Shown here one piece after another: positions 2,472 through 63,452 of a stretch of DNA of 64,000 bases. Source of the stretch: Hypanus sabinus (lineage: Eukaryota); the NCBI RefSeq assembly GCF_030144855.1, contig NC_082710.1, positions 152,830,001 through 152,894,000 on the forward strand, in the 5' to 3' direction. A program made the translations under genes and the position numbers. The notes under the pieces are model-generated. The model was not told where the DNA came from. It saw only the letters and a list, made by a program, of their open reading frames with translations, and searched no databases. Each line of letters starts with the position of its first letter. Positions within the stretch are counted from its first letter, which is position 1.

Positions 2472-2563
2472 GACTCAGTGAGCCCCATGGAGCAGGTCCC
2501 ATACTGCTGTTCATGGCTATGTTTGCAATGATTATTTGGAGTGATGTAGAGGAGCTGCATTGA
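2472..2563 (+). CDS. MHC class I-like paralog C, last coding exon (GLSEPHGAGPILLFMAMFAMIIWSDVEELH*)
   Basis: Preceded by acceptor ggcag and in phase 1. Homologous to 30415-30527 and 51009-51121. Followed by the same GTGGGT donor (2586) and ttttgcag acceptor (2668). The upstream exons are not in the window. Confidence 0.7.
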
Positions 2564-2668
2564 GTTAGCTAAGACAATACTGCAGGTGGGTAAACACAGA
2601 ATCATTAGCTAATCCTGTTTTCTTTTGCAGTATTGGACAACCAATCTCTTCTCAGTTTTCTTTTGCAG

Positions 2669-3230
2669 ATAAGTGTTTGGCCCTAACTCAAGCACAGCTC
2701 TGAATACAGGGTGGAGCCTCAGCCTGGTTTGGTAATGAATGGCCACATATTTCAGTATACTTAGTGTTGCATTAGTGTGGAAACTGATTACCTTAATCTT
2801 CTGCTGCTTTTCAATGCACCTTTTTACCAGTTTTAACTTTTTCTTACACCGCACTCAGAATTCAGGTTTCAGTGTTGAAATCTGAGCATCTCATTCACAA
2901 GGTCTTATGTGAGATGAGTTGCTTTCCTCAGCTTTATCTAAAACATTGATATCATATATCAGACCATTTCTGTGAAGGGCTGCGGCCAAGGAAAGTTAGT
3001 GAGACAGAGCAGAGAAAGCTTTGCTGGGTGATTGGAAGTACATCATTGGAAGTGGGAATGCTATGGACATTGGACACCCTAAAGTAATTCTTTCCTTAAT
3101 GGAGATTGGGAGGGTCCATCATTTAGCTTAAAATATGACCAGAAGCCTCTAGCTATTGGAGTAATTTGGTTTGAGATAAGAGTTGAAAATATCTGATAAT
3201 CATAAAATAATTGTAGATAGATACCTGAAT
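2669..3230 (+). other. 3' UTR exon of paralog C
   Basis: Colinear homology with 30613-31150 (gene A) and with the reverse complement of 50831-50925 plus 49850-50187 (gene B). Confidence 0.65.
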
Positions 3231-3869
3231 ATGTATGTGTGTGGCAACCTCTCTCCTTGCTTCTCCCAGAGGAAGGTTCTTGCATTCGAATGATCTATGT
3301 CTCTCCCTCAGTGCCATCAGAGGGTGGTGCCAGAGCAAGGTTAAATCAGTGCAGTTTGTGGATTGAACTCTAATTCTGGTGGGTTGTATTTTTTGTTACT
3401 TGTTTGTGTGATAGTGGTGCACATACACAAAGCAGCCTCTCAGCGGCCAACCAAAGGTGGTCTTATCTTTGTTAAATGTGTTTTTATACATTGTAAAGCT
3501 GTTCTTAACTGCAGTAACTACATGTACAGCAGGTCTACTGCATTAGTGATCTGCTCATTGTTCCGAGTAGCTGGCTGGGATGCCGTAAGTGGCGGCTGGT
3601 GGTTCAGAGAAGGTGAGTCGGTGCATTGGGCTAAGGAAGTTTTGTCAGGCCATTGGGCCAAGAGATTTCAGGCCAAGGGATTCAAGTGGAGTTGCAGGAG
3701 CTGGATTAGGTTCGGAAGAGCTGACCTGGGTGTAGACCATGCTGTTACCTGCTACTCAAAGGCACCGGATGCTTTCAAGATGACACGAAGATGCTGTGTA
3801 ATGAAATTGGCTGTATCCATGTATGGTTTGAATGACAATTAAATTTCATTTGATTTGATTTGATCTGAT

Positions 3870-4140
3870 TTTGATACCAGCACCAGGAGACATCATTTTA
3901 AGGTGAATGGAGGGAAGTTTATGGAAGATGTCAGAAGTAGTTTTTCGGAGACAGTGAATGGCGGGTGTCTGGAATGCATTGCTGGGGTGGTGGTAGATGC
4001 TGATGCAATGGGGATATTTAGAAGTCTCTTAGATAGGCAAATGGATGTAACAAAAATAGAGGATTTGATGCAGTGCTAGGAGGAAAGATTAAGACTGATT
4101 GTGCAGTACATTGTTTTTGGTCAAAACAACATCATGGGCC
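3870..4140 (+). mobile_element. CR1 LINE 3' fragment
   Basis: accagcaccaggagacat-ttttaaggtgaatggagggaagttt...ggaatgcattgctgggg...ttagataggcaaatggatg matches the CR1 3' end seen repeatedly in this window. Confidence 0.6.
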
Positions 4141-5489
4141 AAAAGGACTGTACTGTTCCATGAAACACAAGTGTAGAAATATTGCTGAACTGCTCTCTGA
4201 TCATGCAGCATTCACTTAATACAGTCTCTGACAATGCAACCATTCTCAGCATAGCACCCCCCCCAGGATGCAGACATGCAATGCTGCAACATTGCCCCAC
4301 TACCAAGTCTTTGATCATGCACTGCTCGCTCCGTGCAACAGTGCAGCTCACAAATGCTACAGTGCACCCCTAGAACCACTCCTGTCACCGCAGCATTCTC
4401 TCAGCGATGGTGGATAATTTAGTTCTGAATGTGAACCAGTGTCATTGCTCCAGTGGTGGAGACCATCACTCCAGAAGTGCAGTGTTTCCGTGTAATGATC
4501 AATTTGGATTAGACCAGATGAAAAGGAACTTCAATGGAATTAGTCCCAAATCCATGTAGCCAGACCACTCATCTCCCTGCAATCAAGGGGCAAAAAGTGT
4601 TCTGATCCATCTCTGTTTATTCAAAATGTTTGTAATTGATTTCTCAGCTCTGTTCTGTCTTCCCACTTCTATTCATAACACCACTTATCCATAGAGAGAC
4701 TGGCCCTTCAGCCTGCTGAGCCTGTGCCAACCCACTTGCTACATTTTAATCTCCGCATTTTCATGGACTCCTCTCCCTCACCCCAGATTTTCATACTCAC
4801 TCACACACTAGGAGGAACTTACAACTGTTAGCTAACCTAACAAGGAACATAAGGGACATTTCTTCCACAGGGAAGGAAACAGGAACATCTGGGGAAAACC
4901 ATTGTGGTCACAGATTTTGCACCAAAGCACAACCAGGAGAGGAAGTTATTGAGTTACACGAGGCACCTACTCCAGATAATTCAGATTTGCTCATTCTCCA
5001 TGTAACCCCTTGGAATTCTTTGGTTTGGTTTCTTCCCCCATCACAATGATGCACAGGTAGGTGCATTAAATGGCAACTCTAAATTGCCACTAGTGTCTGG
5101 GTGAGGGGCAGAATCTGAGCAGAAGATTGTGATAACATGGGGAGCATGAAATAAAAATATAGAACTAGTAAAACCAGTTGCTTGCTGGCAGTGTGGACAC
5201 TGGGCTGGATAGCCTGTTTGTCATTTTTTTGATGTTTTGCTTTTCAAACAGGCATTCAGCTTAGTTGTATCAGTTGAGTCTTTTTGTACAATTAGACTGG
5301 TAACTCCCTGTTGTTTTCTTGCACATAGACATAGACTCATACAGCACAGAACTAGACCCTTTGACCCACCAAGGTTATGCTGGCTGTCAACCACCCATTT
5401 GCTCAAATTCAACACTGATCCCATTTTGTTTGTCACACATTTCGATAATTTTCCCCAATTCCCACACATTAGAGATTATTTACAGCAGC

Positions 5490-5740
5490 CAATTTATCTC
5501 CAAACATGTTTTGTCTTTGGAATGTGGAGAGAAAAATGAAGCAGTTGGGGGAATCTTGTGGGGTCACAGAAGGAATTTGCAAACTCCTCACAGACAGCAC
5601 CAGAAGTTGGGATCAAACTTAGGTTTCTGAAGCTTTGAGGCAGTGACTCTCCCTTCTGCACCACTTTGCTGGATGAGCTTTTCTGCAAGTGAGAGTGTTT
5701 TCTGAAGGTTGCACACAGAGTGACTGATTCACATTGGACA
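5490..5740 (-). mobile_element. tRNA-derived SINE (V-SINE/HE1-like)
   Basis: Reverse complement resembles the SINE at 28930-29185 (agtttg-a-gttct, tgctccagtttcctcccaca-tccaaaga). Confidence 0.55.
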
Positions 5741-5999
5741 GCACAGTGGGTGGAGGCAAAGCAGGAGTGAAGTGTGGGAGGTAGAGTGTGTGGTTCACAT
5801 CATGAGTGGGAGAGGTAGGGGAAACAGAGTGGTACTGGAGTGAGGGTGAGAGGTGCAGAGTGAAGGAGGTAAAGAGTGACAGTGCAGGAATGAGGGTAAC
5901 AGTGAGGAGTGTGGGTGAACCTTGAGGGCAAGGATTACAGGAGATGGAGATCTACAGGAGAGTGAGGTGTCTGAGGCATATGAGAGTGAAGGATATAAA

Positions 6000-9128: not shown

Positions 9129-9209
9129 CAGGGGTTCCCAACCTGGGGTCCATGGACCCCTTGCTTAATGGTATTGGTTGGTGGAATTAAAAAGATTGGG
9201 AACCCCTAT
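9129..9209. mobile_element. Short hAT-like MITE
   Basis: Terminal inverted repeats CAGGGGTTCCCAA...TTGGGAACCCCT(A) about 80 bp apart, roughly 400 bp upstream of the gene A start codon. Confidence 0.55.
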
Positions 9210-9479
9210 TTTATACAGTGGCTGGAGATGGTTTGTGGTGAGCATCCACTGGGAGGATCCTGGAAATGGCACGCCCAGAGATGTGTCAGCGACTGGTGTT
9301 GCTGCCTGTGCTTCTCTGTTGCTGGCTGCAGATGTCCACATCCTTATTGGAAGTGGTTTGGCTTCGCACCCTGCAGCTGCACATCCTGTTCCTGGCCAGC
9401 TGTCTACTGCCCTGCCTCCCTCCCTCCACACTCCAGAGCAGCAGCGGGGCCAGTTATTTCTGCAGGAAGATTTTTAGTT

Positions 9480-9609
9480 ACATTAGTTCTTACTGGCTGT
9501 ACCTTGTAGGGAGCAGTATTTATCCCTGAACTGCCTCTGTGAATTTTATCTGCGCCCTCAGCAGTGTATTGGCCAACGAGAGGATTTGTCGAGGTGAGGA
9601 GACACTGCA
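9480..9609 (+). promoter_or_regulatory. Candidate proximal promoter / 5' UTR of gene A
   Basis: Lies immediately upstream of the signal-peptide exon and is locally richer in CpG. Contains TATTTAT (9517-9523) and ATTGG (9568-9572). Positional inference only. Confidence 0.3.
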
Positions 9610-9685
9610 ATGGAGAGTCGGAACGGACCAAGATTGCTCCTTTTCACCATATTGTCTCTCTGCTCTGTTGCGGGAAGCCAGGCAG
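9610..9685 (+). CDS. Gene A exon 1, signal peptide (MESRNGPRLLLFTILSLCSVAGSQA)
   Basis: ATG followed by a basic n-region, hydrophobic core and small-residue cleavage site. Strong donor CAG|GTAAGG in phase 1 joins alpha1 in frame (G+TC = V, then SHSL). Confidence 0.8.
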
Positions 9686-13399: not shown

Positions 13400-14030
13400 A
13401 TTCTTGCTCAATTGTGACCCCTGCTATTTGTGATTTTTATAAATGATCTGGATGCAGAGGCGGAAGGATGGGTGAGTAAGTTTGCAGATGACACGAAGAT
13501 TGGAGGATTTGTGGATGGAGATGTAGGTAGTCGAAGGTTACAAGAGGATATAGACAGGCTGCAGAGTTGGGCAGAAAAATGGCAGATGGAGTTCAATCTG
13601 GACAAGTATGAGGTGATGCATTCTGGAAGGACTAACCAGAAGACTGAGTACAGGATTAATGGTCGGTTAATTAAGAGTGTGGAGGAACAAAGGGACCTTG
13701 GGGTTCAAATCCATACATCCCTCAGCTGCACAGGTTGATAGGGTAGTTAAGCAGGCCAATGAGTTGCTAGGCTTCATTAACGGGGATTGAGTTTGAGAGT
13801 AGAGAGGTCATGTTGCAACTCTACAAATCTCTGGTGAGACCACACTTAGAGTAGTGTGTTCAATTCTGGTCACCTCATTATAGGAAGCATGTGGAAGCTA
13901 TGGAGAGGGTGCAGAGGAGATTTATCAGGATGTTGCCTGGATTGGAGAACAAGTCAAATGAAGCAAGGTTAGCAGAGCTGGAACTTTTCTCTTTGGAGCG
14001 TAGAAGAATGAGAGGGGACGATAGTAGGCA
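13400..14030 (+). mobile_element. CR1 LINE RT fragment
   Basis: IFINDLD...VSKFADDTKIGG...LQEDIDRLQSWAEKWQMEFN. Confidence 0.9.
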
Positions 14031-14169
14031 ATGATCGCTACCCAGTTTTATGTTCAGTGGGTGAAAGAGTTGAAGTAAGACCAGGTTGGGGAGTCCCAAA
14101 GTGGGTGTTTGGAAAAGCAGATTTGGGTATGTTCCAGAAGTTAAGTGAAGAAGCATTGACAAAGATTGA

Positions 14170-14650
14170 TGTTACCGGCCCTACAGCCCTCCATGTTGTG
14201 CCAACCCATATAATCCTTAAAAAAAAGTACTAAACCCACACTGTCCCATAACACTCTATTTTTCTTTCATCCATGTGCCTGTCCAAGAGTCTCTTAAATA
14301 CCCCTAATATTTTAGCCTCCACCACCATCCCTGTTAATTAATTCCAGGCACTTACAACCCTGTGTAAAAAAACTTACCCCTGATGTCCCCCCCCCCCCTA
14401 AACTTACCTCCCTTAATTTTGTACCTATGCCCTCTGGTGTTTGCTATTGGTACCCTGGGAAACAGGTACTGACTATCCACCCTATCTATGCCTCTCATAA
14501 TCTTGTAGACCTCTATCGTCCCCTCTCATTCTTCTACGCTCCAAAGAGAAAAGTTCCAGCTCTGCTAACCTTGCTTCATTTGACTTGTTCTCCAATCCAG
14601 GCAACATCCTGATAAATCTCCTCTGCACCCTCTCCATAGCTTCCACATAT
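14170..14650 (-). mobile_element. CR1 LINE 3' fragment
   Basis: Reverse complement matches the CR1 3' end and 3' UTR, homologous to 13900-14020. Confidence 0.7.
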
Positions 14651-17600
14651 AAGCTGGAAATATAGATGAATTAAACAGTCAGGTGACTTCGGCAATTATA
14701 TGGCAGCAGAAGGATCTATACCCAGGAGTAAAAATATGATGTATAGAAAACTAGTACCATGGTGGACAGAGGAATGTTGTCAGGCTGTAAAAAACAGAAA
14801 TAGAGCATTCAGGCTAGTTAAAAGAACCCATAATATGGTGCATTTGATTCAGTGTAAGAAGGCACAGGCAGTGGTGAGAAGAACTATAAGTCAAGCTAAA
14901 AGGGCAAGTTGGAGGAGGTTTTGCAACAAAATAGGAAGAATAACGCTTGTGGGAGAGGTATGGGGAATGATTAAAAGGATGGGAGGAGATAGAAGGGATT
15001 GGGAATATCCAGTAATGATATCTGAGGAGGAAACAGCAGGGATCAGGCTGAAATCATGGCCAAGTCATTTGTAAAGATAATTTGTTCAGAAAATTTGTCT
15101 GAAGAAGGAAGAAGGGAGAAGGGAAAGAACAATGAGTCAATACCCAGGTGTGTTAAACAAGAGGGAAGAAACAGATGATATAATTGATGATCCATTCACT
15201 TTGGCAGAAATGGTGAGAGTAATAAAGAGATCGAGACCAACCTCCCCAGGGAAAGATCTAATATGCTATGTTATGCTAAAAAAAATCTGGGAGAAGGAGT
15301 GCTCTTGATGTTACTGCATTTTTATAACAGTGTGGGAGGAGGGAAGATTACTAAGTGTATGGAAAGAAGCAGTAGTAATTCCAATAAGGAAACCTGGCAA
15401 GGATACGTCAAAACCCACTAGCTACAGGCCAATAGCACTAACATCAAATATATGTAAGATAATGGAAAGGATGATAACAGAAAGGTTATCATATGATCTT
15501 GAGAAGAGAGGAATGCTGGCAAGTTATCAGTGTGGTTTTAGGAAGGGAAGGAATTCCATGGACTCAGTGATAAGGTTAGAAATAAGAAAGACTGAAAATA
15601 GAAAGGCCCAGGCAAATAAAGATTCAGTAGTTGCAGTGTTTTTTGACTTTGAAAAAGCCTATGATATGATGTGGGAGGAAGGATTATTAATTAAACTGCA
15701 CACGATGGGGTTGGGGGGAGAGCTTTTAATTGGATTAAAGATTTTTTGTTTGGTAGAAAAATTCAAGTTCAGATTAGATCAGAATTATCAAATCAGTACA
15801 TAGTGGGAAATGGCACACCTCAGGGTAGTGTGATTAGCCCGTTACTTTTCATCATTATGCTCAATGATGTCTTCACAAAGGTACCAGTGGATATAGGTAG
15901 GTCACTGTTTGCGGATGATGGGGCCTTGTGGAAAAGAGGCAGGAACATGGAACATGTAATCAGGAAACTACAAGGAGCAATTGATGAAGTGGTAGAGTGG
16001 GGTTATGATTGGGGATGTAGATTTTCAGTAGAAAAAACTCAAACTGTATTTTTCACCAGGAAAAGAATTGAGGTAGGGAAGAAGTTAAGGATGCATGGGA
16101 TTGAATTAGAAAGGGTTAGATCATTTAATTTTCTGGGAGTTATATTTGATTCATGATTAACATGGGCAGACCATATCAGGAAAGTTGAGGAGCAATGTAA
16201 AAAAGTAATAAACGTGATGAGATGTTTGACTGGTAGGGAATGGGGAGCATGTTGTTCAGCATTGAAGAAATATATGTGGCTTTAGTAAGATCTGTGTTGG
16301 ATTATGGAAGTGCAGAATATGGATCAGCAGCTAGGTCTCTTATAAGGAAACTGGATGTGATTCAGGCTCAGTTTTTGAGAGTGTGCAGTGGGGCTTTTAA
16401 AACATCACCAGTATCAGCCCTGCAGGTAGAAATGGGAATAATGCCTTTGGAATTAAGAAGGATGCAGTTGATGGGAAACTACTGTGCTAATTTGCAGGGA
16501 CACAATGATTCTCACCCTGCTAAAGGAGTATTGCAGGAGTCCTGGGAAAATGGGTGGTTTCAGGTAGTCGGGTAGGGAATGATATTGCTAGAGAATGTGG
16601 AGTGTTTGATCTAAGTATAAGTCCTTCAGTAGTTTATCCAGTTGTAGCTCCATGGAAACTTGTATGGCCTGATGTAGACTGGCATTTGTTAGAGGTAAAA
16701 AGGAAAGGAAAATATAAAACTGATTTGGTAAGTGCATTTAACTGTCATGTGATGGAAAAGTATAGTGATTATACTCAGGTTTATACAGATGGTGCTAAGG
16801 AACCTGAAACAGGACTGACAAGGTTTGGGGTGGCTATACCAGCAAAAGCAATTGCAATCAGCAGAAGAACATCTGATAAGTTAGTGGTGTATACGGTAGA
16901 GATGATGGCAGTGTTGGTTGCGTTGCATTGGGTGGAGAAAGCTAGACTAGTCAAAGCATTGATATGCTCAGATTCATCCTCAGTTCTAGCAAGTTTAAGG
17001 TCTTCTCACTCAAACAGCCGGCAAGATGTACTTCATGAAGTCCTTCAGTCAGTCACAAGAGTTGCAAATCAGGGAGGTCCAGTTAAATTTCTATGGGTTC
17101 CAGCTCATGTAGGGGTGAAGGGGAATGAGAGGGTGGATGAGTTGGCAAAGAGGGCATTAAAGAAAGAAAATATAGAAATGCACATTAGTATCAGTAAAGC
17201 AGAGGTTAAGTGTGTAATCTGGGAAAAAATCAACAAAATGTGGCAAGAAAGATGGGACAGGGAGGGGAAAGGGAGGCATCTATATCAAAGACAAAAAAGT
17301 GTTGCAGGTACTAGGGTAAGTAGTAGATGCAGAAGAGAGGAAATTGTGTGGACTAGATTAAGTCTGGGGCACTGTGCACTAAACCAAACATTGAAATTAA
17401 TAGGGAAACACCAGACAGGACTGTGTGAGGAATGTCAGGAAGAGGAGTCAGTAGAACATGTTGTTCTGAGTTGCAGGAAGTATGGGATACAGAGAGAGAT
17501 TATGAGAATTAATCTAAGGGAATTGGGGGTGCAAGAATTCACATTAAAAGGGTTGCTGGCCATGGGTGAGAGAGCACAGGTTAGGGTATTTTTAGCTTTC

Positions 17601-18107
17601 TTAAGGGGTACAGGGGTTTTTGTTTTTTATAGGACTGTTTGAACTGCTTCCGTCTGGTAGGCACTTCAGATCCCTCCAGACTAAGACTAATAGGCACTGG
17701 AGAAGTTTTTTCCCTACTGCAGTCACTTTGCTGAACAGTTGACTGCCCGTTAACTGTCGGCTAACTATTACTTAGATTGCACTACCTGTATGTATAATCT
17801 ATATTTTCATTTATATTTATCATTATTATTGTTATGAGCAGAGAGACAACATCTCCCAGAAGTAAATTACTTGTATGTGCACAGGTACTTGGCAATTAAA
17901 GTCTGATTCTGATTCTGATGGATAAATAGTGATAGGGTACTAGGATGTCCAAAGATGGGAGAATAAAGTATAGGTTAGGGTATGTGTGTGTGTGTGACTG
18001 GGTGAAGGGATTTAGAATGTGAGTCTATCGCACACTCCGAGGCAGAAGGTGGTGGTAATGCACCATTAAGCTGGGTGCCAACCATCATAAAACAAGACAG
18101 AGAGAGA
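14651..18107 (+). mobile_element. Nimb/I-clade LINE, 5'-truncated, with RT and RNase H, frameshifted
   Basis: RT motifs SYRPIALTS, FFDFEKAYD, GTPQGSVISP and LFADD. RNase H VYTDGAK...WVPAHVGVKGNERVDELAK (ORF 16554..17642). 3' UTR ggtggtggtaatgcacc-ttaagctgg-tgccaacc and an (AG)n tail. Confidence 0.9.
17636..17917 (+). mobile_element. Rex-type LINE 3' tail inserted in the Nimb 3' UTR
   Basis: Absent from the second Nimb copy (47020 region). Begins with ELLPSGR-like coding remnant and ends aattaaagtctgattctgattctg. Confidence 0.6.
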
Positions 18108-20992: not shown

Positions 20993-21696
20993 TATGTGGT
21001 AAATAAGGCTTCATTTTAAAAATATTTTATTTGCTTTATTCACTCATGGACTTGGATTCGCAAGGTGAACCACTGTTTAATTCCCTAGAGGTCCTTGAGA
21101 AGGTGGCTGCGAGCTGCCTTTTTGAACTGGTGCAGTACTCAAGGTATGCATATATGCACAATGGTGTTCAGGTCCAAGTAGTACTAAGTCTGTGCTCTCT
21201 CAAGTTTTGGACAAGTCCTCAGTTAGTGACAGTGTCAACAGTTGTTACTGTACATCCACATAGCACAGAAGCAGGCACTTAGACCCAACAGGTCCACGTC
21301 AGCCAAGATTGCTATCTACGTTGGGCTCTAAACATTTCCTATCTGCGTCCCTGTCCAAGTACGTTCAGTGGTGATACCTAAGATGCTCAACAGTTTGGAG
21401 GATTTGGACCCTTCATTTTCTGTCCCCACTGCAATTTGGTTCTTCTATCCAGAGCTGCTTGGGATTTATACATGGCCGATGCAATGAGGCCTGTTTCAGT
21501 GGTGGTGGTTCCATGTTGATGGGGAGCCAATCACTGGGGGGGGGGGGGGGTCTAATCCAGACCTGTATGTGTGTGCCTGTGTATTAGTTTGGGCAAGTGG
21601 ACAGTTTTCCATCAGACCTTTGAGTTGTGCCTTATAAATGGAGGGCATCCTTAGTTATTTTCTCACACTCCTCTCTCACTCTCTTCTTTTTTTCAG

Positions 21697-21945
21697 TCTC
21701 CCACAGCTTGACATATTTCTACCTCCATTCGCTAAACATTCCTGGGCTGCCATACATCTCCATGGTTGGGATGTTGGACGACTTGCAGATATACTACTAT
21801 GACAGCACCCTCCAGGCGGTAGAAGCCAAGCAACAGTGGATCATGGATGGCTTTTCAGCTCAAGACTGGAAAAACCAGAAAGGGATCCTGGACATGATTA
21901 AAAAGCTCCTTTCTCATAATCTGACTCCATTCACCTCAATGTTTA
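21697..21945 (+). CDS. Gene A exon 2, MHC class I-like alpha1 domain
   Basis: Polypyrimidine tract and ttcag acceptor. Reads SHSLTYFY...PGLPYISMVGMLDDLQIYYYDS...QQWI...DW. Donor A|GTACGT in phase 1. 249 nt, the same length as the gene B exon. Confidence 0.93.
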
Positions 21946-25926: not shown

Positions 25927-26196
25927 GCATCGATTTCATCCAGGCGCTTCTGGGCTGCACGCAATCTGCAAATACATTCAAAACCTTCCTCAAGATTGGC
26001 TGCCAAGATTTGGGAGAGCTCAGTTGTGACTTCACTACTGGAAAGTGTATTGCCACTGGTGTCCTGGCATTGTTAAATAGTTATCTTCAGCAAGTTAATA
26101 TTGCTGATATTCCTGAAATTTATATGATGAACAGTACCTGTATTCAGTGTTTGCAGAAAGGTCTTCAGCTTGGCAGAGAGGAGCTTGAAAGGCAAG
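25927..26196 (+). CDS. Gene A exon 3, MHC class I-like alpha2 domain
   Basis: Acceptor ttccag. Reads IDFIQALLGC...STCIQCLQKGLQLGREELERQ, with the canonical C101/C164-equivalent pair. Donor AAG|GCAAGT (GC-AG) keeps phase 1. 270 nt. Confidence 0.88.
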
Positions 26197-27011
26197 GCAA
26201 GTAGAACATCTGATTTCATACTGTAAGCTCTGTGAGGAAACTCCTGCTTCAGACAATTGATGGACTCCTGATCCGACATGTTCAGAGATGTCTTGAAACC
26301 AAATGGATGGGGGCAGCCTGATTCTAAGTTTGTGATGGAGTTTTTGATTCAGGACAGTGAGGGAACTCACAATCAGAGTGCCCTGATCAAATTTGGTGAG
26401 TGGAGTTCTGATGCAAGAAGATGAGAGAGGTCCCAATCTGCGACACTGGGGGATCTCCCAATTTTGAATGGTGAGCAATGTCCTTATCTGGGGTAGTGAG
26501 GGATCTCTTCATCTAGGACAGTGAAAGATACCTCAGTTGAAGGTGACTAATGATGTCCAAGTCAGGGATAGTGTGGAAACTTCTATTTAGACACAGTCAT
26601 ATATCTCCCAATCCAGGACATTGAGAGCATCTCTTGATCAGGAATTTTGAAGGATCTCCCAACTAAGGCTGGTAAGATAAACTTAATTTGGGATGATGAC
26701 AGCATGATCAATCTTGGAATATGAGGATAATATTGATTTGGGACTATGGGTGATGTAAAGATTGGTAATGGTGACTGTAACCTTGATCTGGGCCTGTCAG
26801 ATGAATGAAAATTACTGCTGGCTGTGGTCTGCATGGCCTTGAGCTGGGGAGATGATTTCAGGCAGGATAGTAATTCATAGTGAGCCAGGTCCTGGTCTGA
26901 GGCAGTAAAGAGTAAGAGTCCCACTCTTGGACACTGTAACTTTCATTTGTAATGGTAAGATAACATAAGTTTGTGTTGAGTTAGTGATGTTAATTCTTCA
27001 TTCTTTCCCAG

Positions 27012-27287
27012 TTGCTCCAGAGGTTCAGGTGATGAAAAAGAGGCCAACAGCTACTGCAGGCAAGAGTCTCTCATGCATCATCACTCCCTTCTACCCCCGT
27101 GCTATCAACGCCACTTGGCTGAAGAATGGGCGGGTTATCTCTGAAGACTACAAGGTGACCATGCTACCAAACTACAATGATACATACTGGATGGAACTGG
27201 TCATTGAGCTGCAGGACAATGATGTGAACATCTATACCTGCCATGTCGAGCACAGCAGCCTGCCAGAGACACTGATGGCGCGGGGAG
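27012..27287 (+). CDS. Gene A exon 4, alpha3 (C1-set Ig) domain
   Basis: Acceptor tttcccag. Contains LSCIITPFYP...W...YTCHVEHSSL. Donor G|GTAGGT. 276 nt. Confidence 0.95.
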
Positions 27288-27499
27288 GTAGGTCATTGTA
27301 TGGTACAGAATTTGCATCATTCATTTGTGATGGTTCCTAAATTCATATGGCACTGAAGGAGGCCATTCAGCTTACCACATACATGCTGATCCTCTGGTGC
27401 CAATCTATTCAAACCAGTACTTACTTGGTCTGTACTTCAGCCTTCTCTTCCTCGATGATTCAAGTGCTTGCAAGAATTATGATATGAAAATTGTTCTTT

Positions 27500-30414: not shown

Positions 30415-30491
30415 GAGTTGGGGAGCCTCGTGGTGCAGCTCCTTTGCTGGGGCTGATGGCGGCACTTGCGATGATGACTAAAGTGGTGTAG
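30415..30491 (+). CDS. Gene A exon 5 coding part, GPI-signal-like tail (GVGEPRGAAPLLGLMAALAMMTKVV*)
   Basis: Acceptor gagtag in phase 1. 77 nt to TAG, identical in length and stop position to gene B. The exon continues to a donor at 30528. Confidence 0.8.
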
Positions 30492-30612
30492 AGGAGCAGC
30501 AAGGAGAGACTTAAGGCTTCAATACAGGTGGGTAAGCAGGCAGGTCATTTCACTAATCCAGTTTGCCATCACAGTATTGCACAACCAATCTCTTCTCATT
30601 TTTCTTTTGCAG

Positions 30613-31150
30613 ATGGGTGTTTGGCCCAAATCTCAAGCTCAGCTCAGAACACAAGGTGGATCTACTGCCTGGTTTTGTGATTAATGGTTCAACACCTAAG
30701 CAAGCTTAGTGTTGGCTCCAGTGTGGGAACTGCTTAGCTGAATCTTCTGCCACTTTACAGCTCACTTGTTTTGTGATGTTATAACTTTTTCTTATGTCTC
30801 ACTCAGGGATCAGGTTTCATTGTTGTGGTGTGTTGAAGTTTCAATTTCTCATTTGTAAAGCCCTACTTGACCTCAGTTGCTCTTCCCAACCTTAACTCCA
30901 ATCCAATACTGTATATCAGACCATTGCTGTGAAGAACTACTGCCAAGGCAATTTGGTGGGATAAAGCAGTGAAAGTTTTACTGGACATTTGGAAGGACCT
31001 CACTGGAAGTGTGAATTTCTGTTGTGGACTCTGGATAACTAAGAAGAATTCTTTCCTTAATATGAGATTGGGAGGGTCCAACATTTTCTTTAAAATAGGA
31101 GCAGAAACCCCTTGATATTGGTGCAATTTGGGGTGACATAGAGCTAACAA
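30613..31150 (+). other. Gene A 3' UTR exon, after an 85-nt intron at 30528-30612
   Basis: GTGGGT donor and ttttcttttgcag acceptor. Homologous to the paralog C and B UTRs. The 3' end is not defined. Confidence 0.65.
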
Positions 31151-37371: not shown

Positions 37372-40300
37372 TGTCACCCCCTGGGTCGCCTCAGGCTCGC
37401 TCAGCTCATTCTTGTCTAGGGGGAGCAGCCTTCGGCCCCGCCAAACTGGGTAATCAGCTGGTGTGGATGCTGTGTGATGTCCCCGCCTCGCCCAAAAACA
37501 GACAGTACACCATATGCGATTAAATGAGTACAATTTATAAAGGTTACTATAACTAAGTGATTAATAACGATACAGTATATATGAAGAGAAAATTAAAGAA
37601 AAGGCGCCAAACTTATCAAAGTCCAAACCACTTCGTGCACAGCCGTTGGAGCTCAATTTCTGAAGTCTTCTGGCCACCATTCGATCCCCTCCGACCCTCC
37701 GAACTCCTCGACTCGCAGCTCAGGACCCTCCGAACTCCTCGACTCTCCAAACAGCTCAGGACCCTCCGAGTGGTCAACCAAGCACATCTAGCTTCATCCG
37801 CCCCCCCACGACCTCGGAGAATCTCCCGGCCTCGGACCCCCCTTTGGGGTCCGATCCTCGCCCAGCTTAGAGCATTGCGTCCTCTCTCTCGACCCCCTCG
37901 CGCCGATCTGCCCAAAAGCCCGTCAACAAAAGCTTACAGACTCAGAAGAAAGAACATTAATCCCCATTTGGTTTACAAAGGAATACCATTCTCGTTATCA
38001 GTAAATTAGCATTCCTGCTAGTTAACAAAAGGAAACCCTTTCCCAACAGTAACAAAGAAAAAAAAGAAACCCCCTTTACACACTTCCTCCACCAAATAAA
38101 AGTCATGTCCTCATGACTACTAAATAACTCGCCACTTTTCCTGCCAACACACCGTAACCCAAGCACAAACAGTGACATCTCCTCCCCACACAGTAACCCT
38201 CACGCCCTGTTCCTCAGGCGCTACTTAGGCCAACTATCTGGGAGTTCCCTAACCCTTCTGAGGCCTCCGTACCCCCTCACCTAAACCCTTCAGGCTCGGA
38301 CACAACTGGGGATACCTTGGGCCCACTACCAACTCCTCTCTCAACCTCTCACTCATGCCCCACACTGCACACAGCTAACCCTCCCCGCTACACCTGACTC
38401 AATGGGAGAAGGGCCAAAGGTCTCTTCCTCAATCGAGGGAAAGTCAGCAAAAGGCAGCATGTACCACACATCCAGCACATCATCCATCGAATCTGTATTC
38501 TTCCTCATTCCTGTGATCGGTAGCTGCTGTTTGATCTTCTCCAAACGGAAACACGTGGCCTGCACTGCTCCCGCAGTCTCTTCAGCCTCCTGTTCAGTAT
38601 GCACTGCACTTCTCTCCAGCTTTTTCTTCCTCATGACTCCTTCCAGATCAACTTTCAGGTTTTGCACTTCATTTGAACTGTCGATGGTCATCTCCAGGTT
38701 CCCTTCAAGCTTCCGCTTCTCTCTTCTGAGATTCGTCTGTAATTTCTTCACCTCCACAAACTCCCCTCTCCGGGTTCTCAGTTTGCTATTACCCTCAGTC
38801 AGACAACTTTCTTCATTCTCTCCAACTTGTAAGTCTTCTGAATGGTTCCAGATCACTTTCTCCAGTCCCTCCGTCTTCATTTCAAACTTGATTCCGTAGA
38901 GACAGTCTCTCACGAACTGCGACCTTCGCCAGCCCTGGCACGTGTCCCGAAAACACTTTAACTCGGTAGTTCTCAGCTGCTCCTGCAACGACCTCACTTC
39001 ATATTCTCCTGAGGCAAATCCAAGTACCAAGAGATCATCCACATACACCAAAACTCCAAACGCCTCCACATCCCCTATGGTCTTCCACCTGCCCCGCAGG
39101 AAGGTTGCAAGGGCTCCAGATATGCCCTGTGGCATCTTTTCGGACCCAAAGACTCCTAGGGAATTTATAACGGCCGTCTTCTCCTTGCCGGCCCCACTCA
39201 TCGGGATCTGGAAACATCCACTCCTCAGATCCAGCACCTTAAACCACTTCACACCACTCAGACAGGCCATCGCCTCTTCGGCCCTCAGGGCCATATTCTG
39301 GTCACTCTTCAACGCAATATAATCCACACACACGCTGTCTACGTCTTCCACGGCTGTAGGGGCCAGTCGCCGCAACCTCTCTCTCTCCGAGGTGTCTTCA
39401 GCAGTCAACTCCCCTCCCTTGTGGTATTTCGCAGCGTCCACGAAGAGGGTCTCACCCTCAGATACTTCCCCCAGGCCGTACCGCCAATGGCTCTTGTTTG
39501 AATTCGGTATCAGTCCAATGCTGCTACACACATCCACACAAGCAGCTCGAAACTCTGGGTGCATCGACAATGTCTCCAAACAGCGCTCACCCGCCTCCTC
39601 CGGGCAGGCCCCCAAGCGCACCAGCAGGATATTGGTTCTCTCTCGAACAGAAACGCTGCCCGTCTCAACAGGGTACGGACACATCAGCATTAACGATTCA
39701 TGAACCTCAGTCTCTTCCACATTTGCCTCCAAGAACTCCATTTTCACTGACCAACAACCGTCGTCTGGATAATCACCGGCACTGGTACCCCGAATCTCCA
39801 GTGTCCTCAATATCGCCAAGAGTATGCTTCCAATAACGGTTATGAAACAAACTGTACAGCAACTTCACCGGCGCCCCGGTGCCGAGGATGGCTTTAACTT
39901 GACTTCCATCCATCCGTAACAACACCTGTGCGCGTGGCCCCTCTAAGCCTTCAGGAATAGGGTCTGTTCCTTTCGGGAGTTCCTTGGTACATTGCTGGGA
40001 ATGTGCTCCCCCAGAGACCCCAAGCCGTTCCCCCACTGGGCCTCCTCTAAGTTTCCCGACACCTCTCGAATCAACGGAACAACTGATCCCCTTGGCACCA
40101 CAAGCAATTTATCTGCCCCCCTAGGCAAAAAGAGATACCTTAAAAACTTCCCACCAATCTCCTGCCACGGATATGATAAGCCCCCCAGCTGCGGCATTTG
40201 ACTTCCAGTCGAACCACACGCATTTTCCCACACTTTCCCAGAACTGGCAGCGGTCACTTCGAGGTAATTGCGCCCGACAGTTCTAACAAAGTCACAGCCC

Positions 40301-41416
40301 GCCTACTCAAACTTTCAACCCGTCCCTGTCGCTTTTCCTCAGCCAAGCACTGCCACTCACCCAACAACTGAGAGGTCCGCTCCGCCCACGCCTCCGCCCC
40401 TTTAGGGCTGGACATTATTCCAATAACCGGGCGGAGCTCACCACTGCTGAAACATCCCAACCTGTCACTCCTCAATCTCCAAACAGTACGGACAACCCAT
40501 GGCCCCACCACCATTTCGTCAGCACTAGTCGGAACTCGAACAACGACAATTGCTACCAACAGCAACCACCCCACCCAACACACACACAGCGATAACCAGC
40601 AATCGCACACCCACAAAGGCACACCAGCTCTTCGCCGCAGACACAATTTAAAGAGGGTGATCACGCAGCTTCCACAGAAATCAATCCCGGACGAGCACCC
40701 CACAATGTAAACCCCTGGGTCGCCTCAGGCTCGCTCAGCTCATTCTTGTCTAGGGGGAGCAGCCTTCAGCCCCGCCAAACTGGGTCATCAGCTGGTGTGG
40801 ATGCTGTGTGATGTCCCCGCCTCGCCCAAAAACAGACAGTACACCATATGCGATTAAATGAGTACAATTTATAAAGGTTACTATAACTAAGTGATTAATA
40901 ACGATACAGTATATATGAAGAGAAAATTAAAGAAAAGGCGCCAAACTTATCAAAGTCCAAACTACTTCGTGCACAGCCGTTGGAGCTCAATTTCTGAAGT
41001 CTTCTGGCCACCATTCGATCCCCTCCGACCCTCCGAACTCCTCGACTCGCAGCTCAGGACCCTCCGAACTCCTCGACTCTCCAAACAGCTCAGGACCCTC
41101 CGAGTGGTCAACCAAGCACATCTAGCTTCATCCCCCCCCCCACGACCTCGGAGAATCTCCCGGCCTCGGACCCCCCTTTGGGGTCCGATCCTCGCCCAGC
41201 TTAGAGCATTGCGTCCTCTCTCTCTCGACCCCCTCGCGCCGATCTGCCCAAAAGCCCGTCAACAAAAGCTTACAGACTCAGAAGAAAGAACATTAATCCC
41301 CATTTGGTTTCCAAAGGAATACCATTCTCGTTATCAGTAAATTAGCATTCCTGCTAGTTAACAAAAGGAAACCCTTTCCCAACAGTAACAAAGAAAAAAA
41401 AGAAACCCCCTTTACA
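37372..41416 (-). mobile_element. Non-autonomous Gypsy LTR retrotransposon with both LTRs
   Basis: LTRs at 37372-38080 and 40706-41416 (about 99% identical by eye) with TG...CA ends and 4-bp TSD CTTA. PBS TGGGGTGCTCGTCCGGGA is tRNA-Pro-like; PPT TGGTGGAGGAAGTG. Internal part has PNMA-like gag, a degenerate protease and RT pieces (YVDD), but no RNase H or integrase. Confidence 0.93.
38353..39819 (-). CDS. 488-aa chimeric ORF: degenerate Gypsy RT fragments plus a myosin heavy-chain rod-like segment
   Basis: RT motifs [18 protein letters not shown] and LVYVDDLLV are followed by [19 protein letters not shown]...[24 protein letters not shown]. Confidence 0.55.
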
Positions 41417-45800: not shown

Positions 45801-46166
45801 GGGTGAGTTTGAAGGGAACACAGAAAACAGAAGTAGAGACCCAAGTGAGTCTCCTCGAACTATGGGAATTGAGGCAACAGTGAGGTTCAGGGAGCAAGGA
45901 ATATGTTATATGTGACCCAGATGCTGATATATCAGATTAATCAAAATCTTACCTTGTATAGCTCCGCCCTGGAGTATGAAGACCCAATTTTTGGACAAAC
46001 ATGAATGAACTAACTAACGAAATTTCAATTTGTCTGAAGGTTTCCTATAATTTTTTAAACAATTTTATAACTTCCATCACTTTAGAGCCGAGATTCGTGG
46101 TTGAGTTTGTGAGCTGAATCTAGTGATCTGGCTTTAGCCAATGTAGTCAGAGCCTGACCATGCATG

Positions 46167-47220
46167 CAGGCACTTCAAGATGGGGCTAAGGAACCTGAAA
46201 CAGGAGTGACCGGGTTTGGCGGGGCTATACCAGCAAAAGCAATTGCAATCAGCAGGAGAACATCTGATAAGCTGGCGGTGTATACAGTGGAGATGCTGGC
46301 AGTGTTGGTTGTGTTGCGTTGGGTGGAGAAAGCCAGACTCGTCAAAGCATTGATATGCTCAGATTCATCCTCAGTTCTAGCAAGGTTAAGGTCTTCTCAC
46401 TCAAACAGCCGGCAAGATGTACTTCATGAATTCCTTCAGTCAGTCAGAAGAGTCGCAAATCAGAGAGGTCCGGTTAAATTCCAATGGGTTCCAGCTCATG
46501 TAGGAGGGAAGGGGAACGAGAGGGTGGATAAGTTGGCAAAGAGGGTGTTAAAGAAAGAAAATATAGAAATGTACATTAGTATCAGTAACGCAGAGGTTAA
46601 GTGTGTTATCTGGTGAAAAATCAACCAAGTGTGGCAAGAAAGATGGGACAGGGTGGGGAAAGGGAGGCATTTAGATCAAATACAAAAAGTTTTGCAGGTA
46701 CTAGGGTAGGTAGTAGATACAGAAGAGAGGAAATTGTGTGGACTCGGTGAAGGCTGGGGCACTGTGCACTAAACCAAAACTTGAAATTAATAGGGAAACA
46801 CCAGACAGGACTGTGTGTGGAATGTCAGGAAGAGGAGTCAGTAGAACATGTTGTTCTGAGTTGCAGGAAGTATGGGATACAGAGAGAGATGATGAGAATT
46901 AATCTAAGGGAATTGGGGGAGCAGGAATTCACATTAAAAGGGTTGCTGAGCATGGGTGAGAGAGCACAGTTTAGGGTATTTTTAGCTTTCTTAAGGGGTA
47001 CAGGGGTTTTTGTTTTTTTATAGGATATGATGGATAAACAGGAATGGGGTACTAGGATGGCTAAAGATGGGAGGATAAAGTGTAGGTTAGGGTATGTGTT
47101 TGTGGGATTGGGTGAACGGATTTAGAATGTGAGACTATCGCACATTCCGGAGCAGAAGGTGGCGGTAGTGCGCCACTAAGCTGGGTGCCAACCACTGTAA
47201 AACAAGGATAGAGAGAGAGA
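46167..47220 (+). mobile_element. Nimb/I-clade LINE 3' fragment (RNase H to tail), second copy
   Basis: Highly similar to 16780-18107 (DGAKEPETG...WVPAHVG...). Carries an in-frame stop (TGG to TGA) and an (AG)n tail. Confidence 0.9.
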
Positions 47221-50925: not shown

Positions 50926-51044
50926 CTGCAAAGGAGAAAAGAGAAGAGATTGAATGTACAGTATAATACTGTAGCAGGTTTAACAAAGGCATCTGTCTGT
51001 TTACCCACCTCCAGTGATGCCTTGGTTCTTTCCTTGCTGCACCT

Positions 51045-51121
51045 CTACATCACTCCAAAGATTATTGCAAACACAGTCATCAGCCCCAACATGGGACCTG
51101 CACAATGGGGCTCACCAACTC
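51045..51121 (-). CDS. Gene B exon 5 coding part, GPI-signal-like tail (GVGEPHCAGPMLGLMTVFAIIFGVM*)
   Basis: Acceptor ggacag in phase 1. 77 nt to TAG. GTGGGT donor 36 nt downstream and an 83-nt intron at 50926-51008. Confidence 0.82.
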
Positions 51122-53374: not shown

Positions 53375-53650
53375 CTCCCATCACCACCAGTGCCTGTGTC
53401 AGGCCGCTGTGCTCGATGTGACAGGCATAGATGTTTGGGTTGTTGCCCTGCAGCTCAATGACTAGTTCCATCCAGTATGTATCATTGAAGTTCGGTAGCA
53501 CAGTCACCTTGTAGCCCTCACAGACAACCTGCCCATTCTTCAGCCACGTAGCATTGATAGCACGGGGGTAGAAGGGAGTGATGATGCATGAGAGACTCTC
53601 GCCTGCAGTAGCTGTTGGCCTCCTTGTTGACACCTGGGCCTCTGGAACAA
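53375..53650 (-). CDS. Gene B exon 4, alpha3 domain
   Basis: Acceptor ttccccag. Contains LSCIITPFYP...W...YACHIEHSGL. Donor G|GTAGGT. 276 nt and about 74% aa identity to gene A alpha3. Confidence 0.95.
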
Positions 53651-60600: not shown

Positions 60601-60846
60601 CTTGCCTTTCAGATGCTTCTTTTCCAAGCTGAACAGCTCTTTGCAAGTACCGAATGCAGCAAATCTCCAATTCATGCTGTTCTTTGAAATTGAGTTGCTG
60701 AAATGAATTGAACAATCCTATGAGATTTTTCTTTGTGCTAATATCATTGCTGATTGCTCCAAATTCAGGGATGTTGACTTTTAGAATCAGATTGACCGTA
60801 TTTCCAGTCTGTGTGCAGCCCAAGATTCCCTGTATGTAGCTGAAGT
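60601..60846 (-). CDS. Gene B exon 3, alpha2 domain (8 aa shorter than gene A)
   Basis: Acceptor tttacag. Reads FSYIQGILGCTQ...ICCIRYLQRAVQLGKEASERQ. Donor AAG|GCAAGT (GC-AG). 246 nt, phase 1. Confidence 0.88.
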
Positions 60847-60946
60847 CTGTAAAGTAACAACAGATTAATTAACATTCATGGCTGAAGCTTCCAACATTAA
60901 ATCTGATATCCATCTGGATAATGATCTACTAAGTACATAAATGCTA

Positions 60947-61332
60947 CAAAGGCTGATTGATAAGTTTATGGCCTAAGGTAGAAGGAGTCAATTTAAGAAA
61001 ACCTAGCACATTTTTCAACATACTTCCCTCCTTCATTTACACACTTAGTCCAGAGGACATGGAGCATATGGATCGTCGACCTCCAGAAAGCGTCCACAGC
61101 AGGGGTGATTGATAAATTTGTGGCCTAATGTAGAGGAGATGAGTTATACAGCTCTCATTACTTGCATATGCAGTTCAACTCGGTGATTATGCAGAAAGTT
61201 TGAAGTTAATAACTCGCCAGGGGTAATAAGTCCGTGGCCTAAGGTGGAAGGAAATGTTGAAATATAAATGTGCTAGGTTTTCTAAAATTGACTCATTCTA
61301 CCTTAAGCCACAAACTTATCAATCACTCTTCG
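60947..61332. mobile_element. Tc1/mariner-type MITE
   Basis: Imperfect TIRs of about 80 bp (tgattgataagttt-tggc-taaggtagaa...aaaacctagcacattt) flanked by TA on both sides. Two further internal partial copies of the terminal motif. Confidence 0.8.
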
Positions 61333-61339
61333 TACGTGA

Positions 61340-61870
61340 CAAAGAGGTGCACAAAGTAGTGGGTCACGGTGAGGGACTGTGTACAGTTAAGGCTGAGAGC
61401 ATGGGGTGACAGCGTACCATATAGAACATTTGTCTGTGGCACAGATCACAGGGTCTTGTGGAATCAGTAATCAATGTGAGCAACTGTACATGGCAGGGTG
61501 GGAGGGGAAGTTTAAAGAGATTAATTTGTTATCAAAGAATGGCAATGTTTTCAAGTGTACAGTGAAAAACATTCGGATTGGTTACATCAAAGCTGGTAGG
61601 TAAACACCAAAGCCCTGAAAGACAAAAGGCTGTGGGAGTAGTGGACAGCCAGTCCCATCACAGGTACAGCTCTCCACATCGTTCAGGACATCTGCTGAAG
61701 GCAATATCCCAGGAAGACAACATCCATCATCTGGAACCGCACCCTCCATATCATCCAGGACAGACCCTCATCTTGATGCTCCCACCAGGAAGGAGAGACA
61801 GGCCTAAGGACTCACACCTCAGGCTCCGACAAGAGCTCCATGACCAACAGCACCAGGTTCTTTAACCAAC
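61340..61870 (+). mobile_element. Rex1/Babar-type LINE 3' fragment
   Basis: HHLEPHPPYHPG...LLPPGRR-like C-terminal motif. Confidence 0.5.
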
Positions 61871-62339
61871 CAGAAAAACCTTAACGTGACCCGGGATTAT
61901 AGTCTTATCTCTCTTAACCTTGCACAAATATTACATTTATTTTGTTGTATATCTTTGCACATGTGCAGGTTGTGTATACTTAAAATTTTAAATTGACTCC
62001 ATGCTAACATGTCCTGTAATACAGAATGCTGCTGCTGCAAAACAGTAATTTTATGGCATTTGTACCCTGTGTATGTAAGCCTATGATCAGAAAAAAAATT
62101 GAGCTTGAACATATGCAGAGTGCACAGTACAGAGATCACATTGAAACAGTGTGCATACAAAGCAGGGGGCACATTGAAGGACTCTGTCAATATGTGGGAC
62201 AGAGCAGGAGCTTGGTGAGAATCTGCACTGTGCAGTCGGTGCTGAACCACGTCCACTGCAGAGTTACGGCGGTGAATTGTGAAAGCAACGTGTTTGTATT
62301 CAGTGTCAATAAGCACAGAGTGTGCACCACAGCAGGTCT

Positions 62340-62760
62340 GGTCGCTCTGTGATGGTGAGGATTTCGAGAAGGTGCAGAAGATGCTTACCAGATGCTGCCT
62401 GCATTGAACAGCATGTGCTATAACAAGAGATTGGACCAACTTGGGCTGTTTTCAGTCGACATCTGTATCATTTTTTCCTTAGTTGAAATGTCTAATACAA
62501 GAGGGTATGTTCAATGCTGATGTGCAGGGTCAGTCTTTAACAGAGTGGCCCGTTCCTAAATTGTGCTGCCAGGGATGGTGGAATTAGCAGATACAAAGAG
62601 GGTGTTCAAGAAACCTAGGCGAGCAGGAAATGGGATGACATGGACATTGTGTACACAGAAAAGATTAGATTAGTTTGGCATTTGATTATTAATATAATTA
62701 GTTCAGCAGAACTTTGTGGGCCAAAGGGCCTATTCCTGTGCTGTTGTGTTCTATGTTCTA
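62340..62760 (+). mobile_element. CR1 3' fragment
   Basis: agaaggtgcagaagatg-ttaccagatgctgcctg...ttgggctgtttt...gggccaaagggcct-ttcctgtgctg tail. Confidence 0.65.
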
Positions 62761-63203
62761 ATGCACGGAGTCACAGCACCGAATTAGATCTGGAAAGCGT
62801 CACTGTGGCAGGTGACTAGGTAAGAGCCATTGACGTCTTAGTTCCAAACAATCCTAGACTGAAGCATTCCCAAGTCTGGAGTTGGGGAGTAGGCAGAGGA
62901 TTGGGTTAGAGCCAGCGCAAATCCTGTGTGGACAGTGGGTTTGATTTTCACTGTTTCTCTGAATAGGTCAGTGGGGAATGAAGACTGGATAATGAGTTTA
63001 CATTGAAGGGTCAGAACTTAGCCAGATGATTAAGATGGAATTCTTGTAATTGGAGTTAAGGAAGGTAGAGAGCATAATGGAGAGTTGAAAGAACGAAGGA
63101 ATTTAAACTTGATACAACAAAATCAGATCCAATACAAGATCAAGATATTGGCAATATGCAAGTCACTGACACTCAAGGGACAGTGGAGATGAAAGACACT
63201 CAC

Positions 63204-63452
63204 TAATGAATATGGTGATTGGCTTCAGAAATGTCGAGAGGATCTCATGAAACACGTCAGTTATTTCTTTCTGTTCTTTCTGGTAGTCAGTCGATAAGCC
63301 ATCTGCGATCCACTGATGCTCGATTTCTACTTCACGGAGGGTGCTGTCATAGTAGTCAATCTGCAAGTCATCCAACATCCCAATCCTGAAGAAGGCTGGC
63401 AGTTCAGTAATGTTGATGGATTGGAAGTAGAAATACATCAAGCCGTGTGAGC
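63204..63452 (-). CDS. Gene B exon 2, MHC class I-like alpha1 domain
   Basis: Acceptor ttttactcag. Reads SHGLMYFY...ELPAFFRIGMLDDLQIDYYDS...HQWI. Donor A|GTGAGT. 249 nt and about 52% aa identity to gene A alpha1. Confidence 0.93.

Follow-up and report, generated by a model that had tools for sequence, protein, structure and literature searches.

A conserved tail-less hydrophobic end, putatively a GPI signal, in stingray MHC class I-like genes of the UFA lineage

Genes at the locus

[quoted passage not shown] A six-frame scan combined with tblastn located the class I-like exons, which fall into two sets, genes A and B, and one orphan exon, gene C. It is very nearly certain that these are genes of the UFA lineage, that A and B are intact, and that the hydrophobic, tail-less end of their products is an old and conserved property of that lineage. 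An earlier note, made from the letters of this DNA, had proposed that such an end serves as a signal for a glycosylphosphatidylinositol (GPI) anchor in place of a transmembrane (TM) segment with cytoplasmic tail, and this proposal is weighed below against several alternatives.

Gene A lies on the forward strand. The coding part of its leader exon (9610-9685, +) was placed by tblastn with the protein P0001, by the sequence itself and by the span of the RefSeq coding sequence (CDS); it consists of MESRNGPRLLLFTILSLCSVAGSQA and the first base of a Val codon, ends at the donor g/gtaagg, and is covered by a skate mRNA that aligns over 9543-9685. Judged by eye, the 25-residue leader combines a hydrophobic core with a cleavage region of small residues. 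Intron 1 extends over 12 kb because a remnant of a retrotransposon of the long interspersed nuclear element (LINE) type, with open reading frames (ORFs) for reverse transcriptase and RNase H, lies inside it (13430-17642, +). The leader is followed by the alpha1 exon (21697-21945, +; phase 1 at both ends), the alpha2 exon (25927-26196, +; GC donor gcaagt after the exon), the immunoglobulin (Ig) C1-set alpha3 exon (27012-27287, +; Pfam C1-set E = 1.8e-13) and a terminal coding segment of 77 nucleotides (30415-30491, +) with its TAG at 30489-30491. With the leader included, the model (9610-30491) encodes 315 amino acids, 315/315 of them identical to RefSeq XP_059826634.1; the CDS span is 20,882 nucleotides in both, and the alpha2/alpha3 junction ERQ/VAPE is that of the RefSeq protein. 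A HMMER search of 1.8 billion representative proteins with the alpha3 exon returned a 315-residue match at 88% identity, the cluster of which includes XP_059826634.1. By profile, the C1-set scores above its cut-off and MHC_I reaches 27.1 bits, just below its cut-off of 28.3.

Gene B is placed tail to tail with gene A on the opposite strand. Its alpha1 exon (63204-63452, -; from the sequence, phase 1) is followed by alpha2 (60601-60846, -; 24 nucleotides shorter than in gene A, with the same GC donor), alpha3 (53375-53650, -; phase 1) and a terminal coding segment of 77 nucleotides (51045-51121, -) with its TAG at 51047-51045. The gene is identical (100%) to RefSeq XP_059825168.1, a protein of 313 amino acids (P0165 among the family members below), and the RefSeq CDS span puts its leader approximately 6.75 kb past base 64000, outside the window. 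The earlier note had assembled both proteins at 315 amino acids, which is correct for A, but B has 313 and is incomplete in the window. Its claim that both genes splice in frame through alpha1, alpha2 and alpha3 with phase 1 introns is borne out by the exon coordinates and phases and by the RefSeq identity, every junction being phase 1 with zero stops within exons. Both class I-like genes are thus intact, and the species, Hypanus sabinus, is a cartilaginous fish. In both A and B the alpha2 donor is GC, not GT (AAG/gcaagt at 26197-26202 (+) and 60600-60595 (-)), and since the RefSeq proteins demand exactly that junction, the intron 3' of alpha2 is a conserved GC-AG intron.

Conservation between A and B is also seen in introns. 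Approximately 170 bases 5' of the alpha1 acceptor, at 21455-21630 (+) and 63702-63480 (-), are about 70% conserved, with a G-run in A; this stretch has no usable start codon and is therefore intron sequence, not a leader exon. A leader candidate close to alpha1 (21470-21515) was rejected, as it contains a stop in A and has no ATG in B, the true leader being that at 9610, 12 kb upstream. Similarly, the first 40 or so intron bases after alpha3, at 27288-27330 (+) and 53374-53332 (-), are conserved between A and B far above the rest of the intron, and in-frame read-through past the alpha3 donor gives GRSLYGTEFASF in both genes, after which they diverge. This conserved intron start may act in splicing, or it may supply the last residues of a soluble isoform that retains the intron.

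The stretch from 2472 begins with the terminal exon of gene C (2472-2563, +), the only exon of this gene in the window, its remainder lying upstream. It contains one extra base, with the common TAG out of frame, and reads G-LSEPHGAGP-ILLFMAMFAMIIW-SDVEELH up to its stop (the frameshifted end is also given as ...FAMIIWSDVEELH before the stop). No CDS is called over this exon in the public annotation, and gene C is probably a pseudogene. The occurrence of VGEP at 5911 was attributed to chance, as were the remaining weak tblastn matches.

Assignment to the UFA lineage and expansion in rays

The best match in both sequence and fold is, by far, shark UFA. When the PDB was searched by phmmer with gene A, 8GM8_A came first with E = 2.9e-62 (214 bits), followed by 9CH4 (1e-31, 114 bits) and Xenopus class I (6e-29), with all others at or below 105 bits. 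For gene B, 8GM8 was again first (E = 2.3e-48, runner-up 3e-29; 168 vs 106 bits). Foldseek with the AlphaFold model of gene A likewise ranked 8GM8 first, and among the 50 best PDB matches listed all were class I or class I-like. The entry 8GM8 is titled 'Crystal structure of shark nonclassical MHC CLASS I, UFA' and was released in November 2024, whereas 9CH4 is titled '... UGA' and was released in March 2026. Furthermore, a bamboo shark relative (P0056), the orthologue of 8GM8, has an E-value of 1e-101 against that entry. In a maximum-likelihood tree, whose outgroup is a single TM-type protein, it is placed with the ray genes, and the family as a whole falls into one group together with its shark relatives. 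Shark UFA has the alpha1 motif MLDDLQ-x-YYDS in common with the stingray genes, as well as the extra alpha2 cysteines of the A-type stingray genes, but the stingray identity to it is only about 38-45% over alpha1-alpha3 and its crystal construct comprises the ectodomain. The UFA assignment is thus well supported by best matches. The lineage, which the earlier note had left unnamed, already has a name and a solved structure, and no ordinary TM-bearing member of it was found among the RefSeq models of 11 species and the skate contigs described below.

As a new lineage, UFA has been placed in the class Ib cluster beside UDA and UEA and judged 'very similar to CD1', with reference to unpublished data (Verissimo et al., 2023; PMC10751288). 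In the present assembly no marker genes were found within 10 kb on either side. A 2025 review describes UFA and UGA as single- or low-copy and, citing personal communication, takes crystal structures and mass spectrometry data as suggestive of CD1d-type lipids (PMC12562908). In the full-text literature searched, neither a primary paper on UFA or for 8GM8/9CH4, nor any work linking GPI anchors with cartilaginous-fish class I, nor a published statement on UFA anchoring was found.

Gene A, used as the query in a word-index search, retrieved 25 relatives (E <=1e-60), all of them elasmobranch. Together with cluster mates they represent 11 named species, namely stingrays and mantas (Hypanus, Hemitrygon and two Mobula species), other batoids (Pristis, Amblyraja and Narcine) and sharks (Cetorhinus, Carcharodon, Heterodontus and Scyliorhinus), and a further skate is represented by RNA sequencing (RNA-seq) assemblies. 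The tree contains one gene per shark, one in skates, one in Narcine and two in Pristis. For stingrays and mantas it contains two clades. The A-type clade consists of 1:1 orthologues from Hypanus, Hemitrygon and Mobula, those of gene A in Hemitrygon and Mobula being 85-91% identical to it; the B-type clade has expanded separately in Dasyatidae and in Mobulidae. At least five gene products occur in stingrays and mantas, and the window alone holds three loci in 64 kb.

The expanded, diverging family described in the earlier note is therefore recovered in the tree for these batoids, and it is equally apparent in the comparison of A with B. Amino-acid identity between the two is 52% in alpha1 and 38% in alpha2, vs 74% in alpha3, and 50% in the terminal exon; the corresponding ratios of nonsynonymous to synonymous substitution rates (dN/dS) are 0.82, 0.34, 0.52 and 0.61. 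These values are consistent with a platform that is changing fast and an alpha3 domain that is held. In gene B and its orthologue P0164, the two extra alpha2 cysteines of the A-type genes and shark UFA are gone (SCD...KC to SND...KK), and at least the second is gone in the B-type members P0163, P0166 and P0168; all five have short deletions at that site. Such losses and deletions indicate that the B-type platform has probably been reshaped. The stingray expansion, with its A-type orthologues and several B-type copies altered in alpha2, points to a ligand repertoire that is diversifying.

The terminal segment and the sequence after the stop

The product of gene A ends in ...MARGG-VGEPRGAAP-LLGLMAALAMMTKVV and that of gene B in ...VVMGG-VGEPHCAGP-MLGLMTVFAIIFGVM. 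The earlier note had described a 77-nucleotide terminal segment in both genes giving GG-VGEP-xxAxP, a hydrophobic end and TAG, and this is precisely what the sequence contains, the hydrophobic part being 15 residues long with no cytoplasmic residues behind it. Inspection of the gene A terminal exon revealed that the remaining two frames close earlier still. A simple rule for GPI signals was applied, in which the omega residue is one of GASNDC, the omega+2 residue one of GAST, and a spacer of 5-10 residues precedes the tail. In A and B, the G-V-G triad is separated from a tail of 15 residues by a polar spacer of 7 (EPRGAAP or EPHCAGP), which is textbook GPI-signal spacing, with a putative omega site at the second Gly of GG-V-G. 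Such a small triad, 7-10 residues ahead of the tail, is present in all 14 members checked; nearly all have G-V-[G/S], and Mobula and Heterodontus have equivalents. The GPI-signal layout that had been read from the C-terminus of A and B alone is therefore conserved across sharks and rays.

The position of the stop is similarly constant. Full-length RefSeq models of the family from the 11 species are 309-321 amino acids long and stop at one aligned position, shared by sharks, skates, numbfish, sawfish, stingrays and mantas; the sole exception in length, Carcharodon isoform X1 with 331 amino acids, differs only N-terminally. Past the last Pro or charged residue, the hydrophobic run is 13-16 residues with nothing behind it. 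The best 15-residue window has a mean Kyte-Doolittle hydropathy of 1.9-2.8 in all of the 26 family models scored; 0-3 residues follow it, and a basic cluster is absent. As a control, the same scoring was applied to all class I-like or C1-set proteins from that search in which 10-110 residues follow the alpha3-like domain. The non-family relatives with a clear TM segment (hydropathy >2.7) gave 2.8-3.95, with 15-43 residues after the window and 2-4 Lys or Arg in the next 12.

Transcripts carry the same end. Two Logan contigs from separate RNA-seq runs of skate contain an intron-free CDS ending in ...VMIIGTW-TAG, followed by about 200 nucleotides of 3' untranslated region (3'UTR). They provide transcript-level support for the junction between alpha3 and the terminal exon and for the stop, in skate and not in stingray. 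Isoform X1 of Carcharodon, Heterodontus and Narcine has the same hydrophobic end.

The earlier note had stated that a basic stop-transfer cluster is absent, which is true of the ORF, but the 36 nucleotides that immediately follow the stop would read, in frame, RSSKERLKASIQ for A and RCSKERTKASLE for B. In gene A, the post-stop region (30492-30655, +) comprises these 36 purine-rich nucleotides, a donor, a mini-intron, an exon-like block and a second donor. The 36 nucleotides close with a perfect donor, CAG/GTGGGTAA, which is conserved and lies at 30526-30535 in A. This is followed by an intron-like stretch of 83 nucleotides with a strong, conserved polypyrimidine tract and acceptor (30586-30612), and then by an exon-like block of 43 nucleotides with its own donor. 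The comparison covers the three window paralogues and one skate mRNA. Five of the six longest runs that are invariant among the three paralogues are at or beside predicted splice signals, and the other spans the TAG: CAATCTCTTCTC and TTTGCAG form the polypyrimidine tract and acceptor, AGGTGGGTAA the donor and GGTGGA the second donor, CTTTACTTG is located just 5' of the terminal-exon acceptor, and TGTAGAGG surrounds the stop.

Past its TAG, the skate mRNA reads AGA AGA GGT GCA ATG AGG AGA, and the skate contig L001 (1134-1336) has AGAAGAGGTGCAATGAGGAGAGAGGTCAG after the TAG, purine-rich like the stingray post-stop sequence. These sequences hint that a purine-rich post-stop block has been kept across batoids; the remaining skate 3'UTR gave no alignment to the window. 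From this arrangement we infer that the post-stop region represents former stop-transfer and cytoplasmic exons, which now form a 3'UTR that is probably spliced. The block itself may be kept as a splicing enhancer.

GPI attachment and its alternatives

GPI attachment is the best reading of this tail, with a probability of roughly 0.65. It is favoured because the small triad and spacer are conserved, the hydrophobicity is modest, there are zero cytoplasmic residues, and Qa-2 and MICA*008 offer precedents. Under this reading each protein would begin with a leader that is cleaved off, continue through an alpha1/alpha2 platform that is divergent and a C1-set alpha3 domain that is conserved, and close with a 25-residue C-terminal GPI signal. 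The GPI transamidase in the endoplasmic reticulum would cut at the omega Gly and attach GPI, leaving a mature protein of about 265 amino acids in the outer leaflet without a cytoplasmic tail. The anchored form would lack the tyrosine-based endosomal sorting motif of CD1b, CD1c and CD1d and would be releasable by phospholipase. In terms of origin, the terminal exon would be the old TM exon, cut by an ancient TAG just ahead of the stop-transfer residues, and the old cytoplasmic exons would persist as 3'UTR. Soluble forms may exist beside the anchored form.

Several points weigh against this account. The C-terminal 19-residue Kyte-Doolittle window is 1.65 in A, 2.05 in B and 1.65-2.2 family-wide, with the classic cut-off at 1.6. 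The putative omega site is only 2-3 residues beyond alpha3, which makes for a short stalk, and A-type tails have a Lys four residues from the end. The omega-site rule is a hand-made approximation, and purine-rich DNA such as that behind the stop gives Arg, Lys and Glu in any frame. Transcript support in Hypanus is the RefSeq model only. As for the lineage, the UFA call combines best matches with a tree that is without named UAA, UBA, UCA, UDA, UEA and UGA references.

The main rival, improbable though the most serious of the alternatives, is that the C-terminal 15-19 hydrophobic residues are kept as a very short tail-less membrane anchor with no GPI. The 19-residue values above, being at or over the usual 1.6, would suit such an anchor, as would the helix that AlphaFold draws at residues 301-314, with a predicted local distance difference test (pLDDT) score below 50; the gene A model has a mean of 72.5, with values of 70-88 in the platform and alpha3 and of less than 50 in the leader and the last 23 residues. 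However, only 13-16 residues are hydrophobic without interruption; a Pro precedes them, nothing follows them, basic residues do not flank them, and the TM segments of relatives are clearly more hydrophobic (2.8-3.95). Type I proteins that end in this manner are known either to receive GPI or to be retained and degraded. The truncated class I-like TM segments of Qa-2 and MICA*008 became GPI signals.

A mainly secreted, soluble lipid-binding protein is less plausible still. Here the hydrophobic end would be no working anchor, or transcripts without it would dominate. In RefSeq isoforms X2 and X3 of Narcine (numbfish), short polar ends take its place; read-through of the alpha3 donor, which adds GRSLYGTEFASF... 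and is unusually conserved between A and B, could provide a comparable end. Nevertheless, the hydrophobic end has retained its length and character on both sides of the shark-ray split and is found in every species' main model and in the skate mRNA contigs, and a useless hydrophobic tail would not persist.

The possibility that real transcripts use a downstream exon for a full TM and tail, or that the TAG is read through, with the short end as an annotation artefact, is very unlikely. It draws on the post-stop sequence, which would encode a basic cluster in frame, on the splice signals of the two further small exons, which are the best-conserved stretches among the paralogues, and on the AGA AGA GGT... 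past the TAG of the skate mRNA. Yet the gene A exon is closed in 3/3 frames ahead of the donor, and the basic-looking translation follows from the purine-rich DNA anyway. An alternative exon encoding a full TM and tail had been named in the earlier note as the outcome that would speak against it, and such an end, or any longer one, occurs in no model from the 11 species; nor does a full TM with tail occur in the skate contigs from the two RNA-seq runs. Read-through of the stop is unlikely to be of importance, because the next block of gene B has an in-frame stop and the skate read-through ends after 14 codons. TAG-A is not known to be leaky. Finally, the suggestion that these are decaying pseudogenes with the common TAG as a disabling mutation is hardly tenable and was dropped for A and B while being retained for C, since the frameshifted terminal exon of gene C with no called CDS, and the transposon insertions filling introns and intergenic spacers, are outweighed in A and B by intact exons and splice sites, dN/dS below 1, the gene A orthologues in Hemitrygon and Mobula, a stop position common with sharks and transcription of the family in skate.

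Comparison with known systems

The precedent of mouse Qa-2 (Q7/Q9) is instructive, as it too has a full class I exon plan in which the TM exon is cut by a stop, leaving a short hydrophobic end. Its unused downstream exons reportedly persist, and soluble forms are said to arise by alternative splicing. In contrast to the stingray genes, Qa-2 binds peptides and is a young branch of the classical class I genes of rodents, of independent origin, whereas the stingray truncation predates the shark-ray split and belongs to a CD1-like lineage. MICA*008, ULBP1-3/RAE-1 and MILL1/2 also carry a class I-like fold on GPI instead of a TM segment and tail, and in MICA*008 it is reportedly the truncated TM segment that serves as the GPI signal. 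ULBP and RAE-1 are without alpha3 and beta2-microglobulin binding, whereas the stingray proteins keep a well-conserved C1-set alpha3. None of MICA*008, ULBP/RAE-1 and MILL1/2 is known to us to present lipids.

A relationship with CD1 is suggested by name and by ligand, as several family members are automatically named 'CD1d-like' and UFA is reported to bind CD1d-type lipids (PMC12562908). The automatic names are, however, inconsistent across the family: besides 'CD1d-like' they include 'H-2 class I histocompatibility antigen, Q7 alpha chain-like', 'MR1-like' and 'zinc-alpha-2-glycoprotein-like', and gene A itself is 'Q7 alpha chain-like' in RefSeq. The match to CD1 is weak (for gene A, chicken CD1-1 at E = 8e-22 vs UFA at 2.9e-62), and on this evidence A and B do not appear to be CD1 proper. 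Moreover, CD1, which occurs in mammals, birds and reptiles, has a TM segment and a short tail, with a YXXZ endosomal sorting motif in CD1b, CD1c and CD1d, whereas the stingray proteins have no tail. The copy number differs from expectation as well, since UFA has been described as single- or low-copy (PMC12562908) and several genes are found here in stingrays, mantas and sawfish.

UFA has been put forward as the cartilaginous-fish counterpart of CD1, and its mode of anchoring decides where lipids are met. A conserved GPI-type end would separate UFA from CD1 in trafficking. The chances are about even that the CD1-like UFA lineage has been GPI-anchored since before the shark-ray split. If so, the oldest known lipid-binding class I system would do without the tail-driven endosomal recycling that mammalian CD1b, CD1c and CD1d rely on. 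Lipids would be loaded along the secretory pathway, at the surface of the cell or via GPI-specific uptake routes, and expansion of the GPI-anchored form in stingrays, mantas and sawfish would have produced two sub-lineages whose grooves are diverging. It would also be a very old, independent case of a truncated TM exon turned into a GPI signal.

Much of the background to these findings is already known: A and B are in RefSeq by automatic annotation, the lineage has been named and crystallised, and the theme of GPI-anchored class I-like proteins is familiar, so that the present analysis refines known biology. The lineage-wide GPI-type end and the stingray expansion appear to be unreported in the literature searched.

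Transposon remnants in the window

Other than the class I genes, the window contains transposon remnants only. A shorter second copy of the LINE-type element in gene A intron 1 lies between the genes (46164-47023, +), and the flanks of the two copies, at 18000-18107 and 47110-47218, are 87% identical. Two near-identical ORF-bearing repeats (37557-38009 and 40891-41340, +) flank an ORF of 488 amino acids at 38353-39819 (-) that has a weak reverse-transcriptase match. From their arrangement, the repeats and the ORF look like a long terminal repeat (LTR) retrotransposon with its two LTRs.

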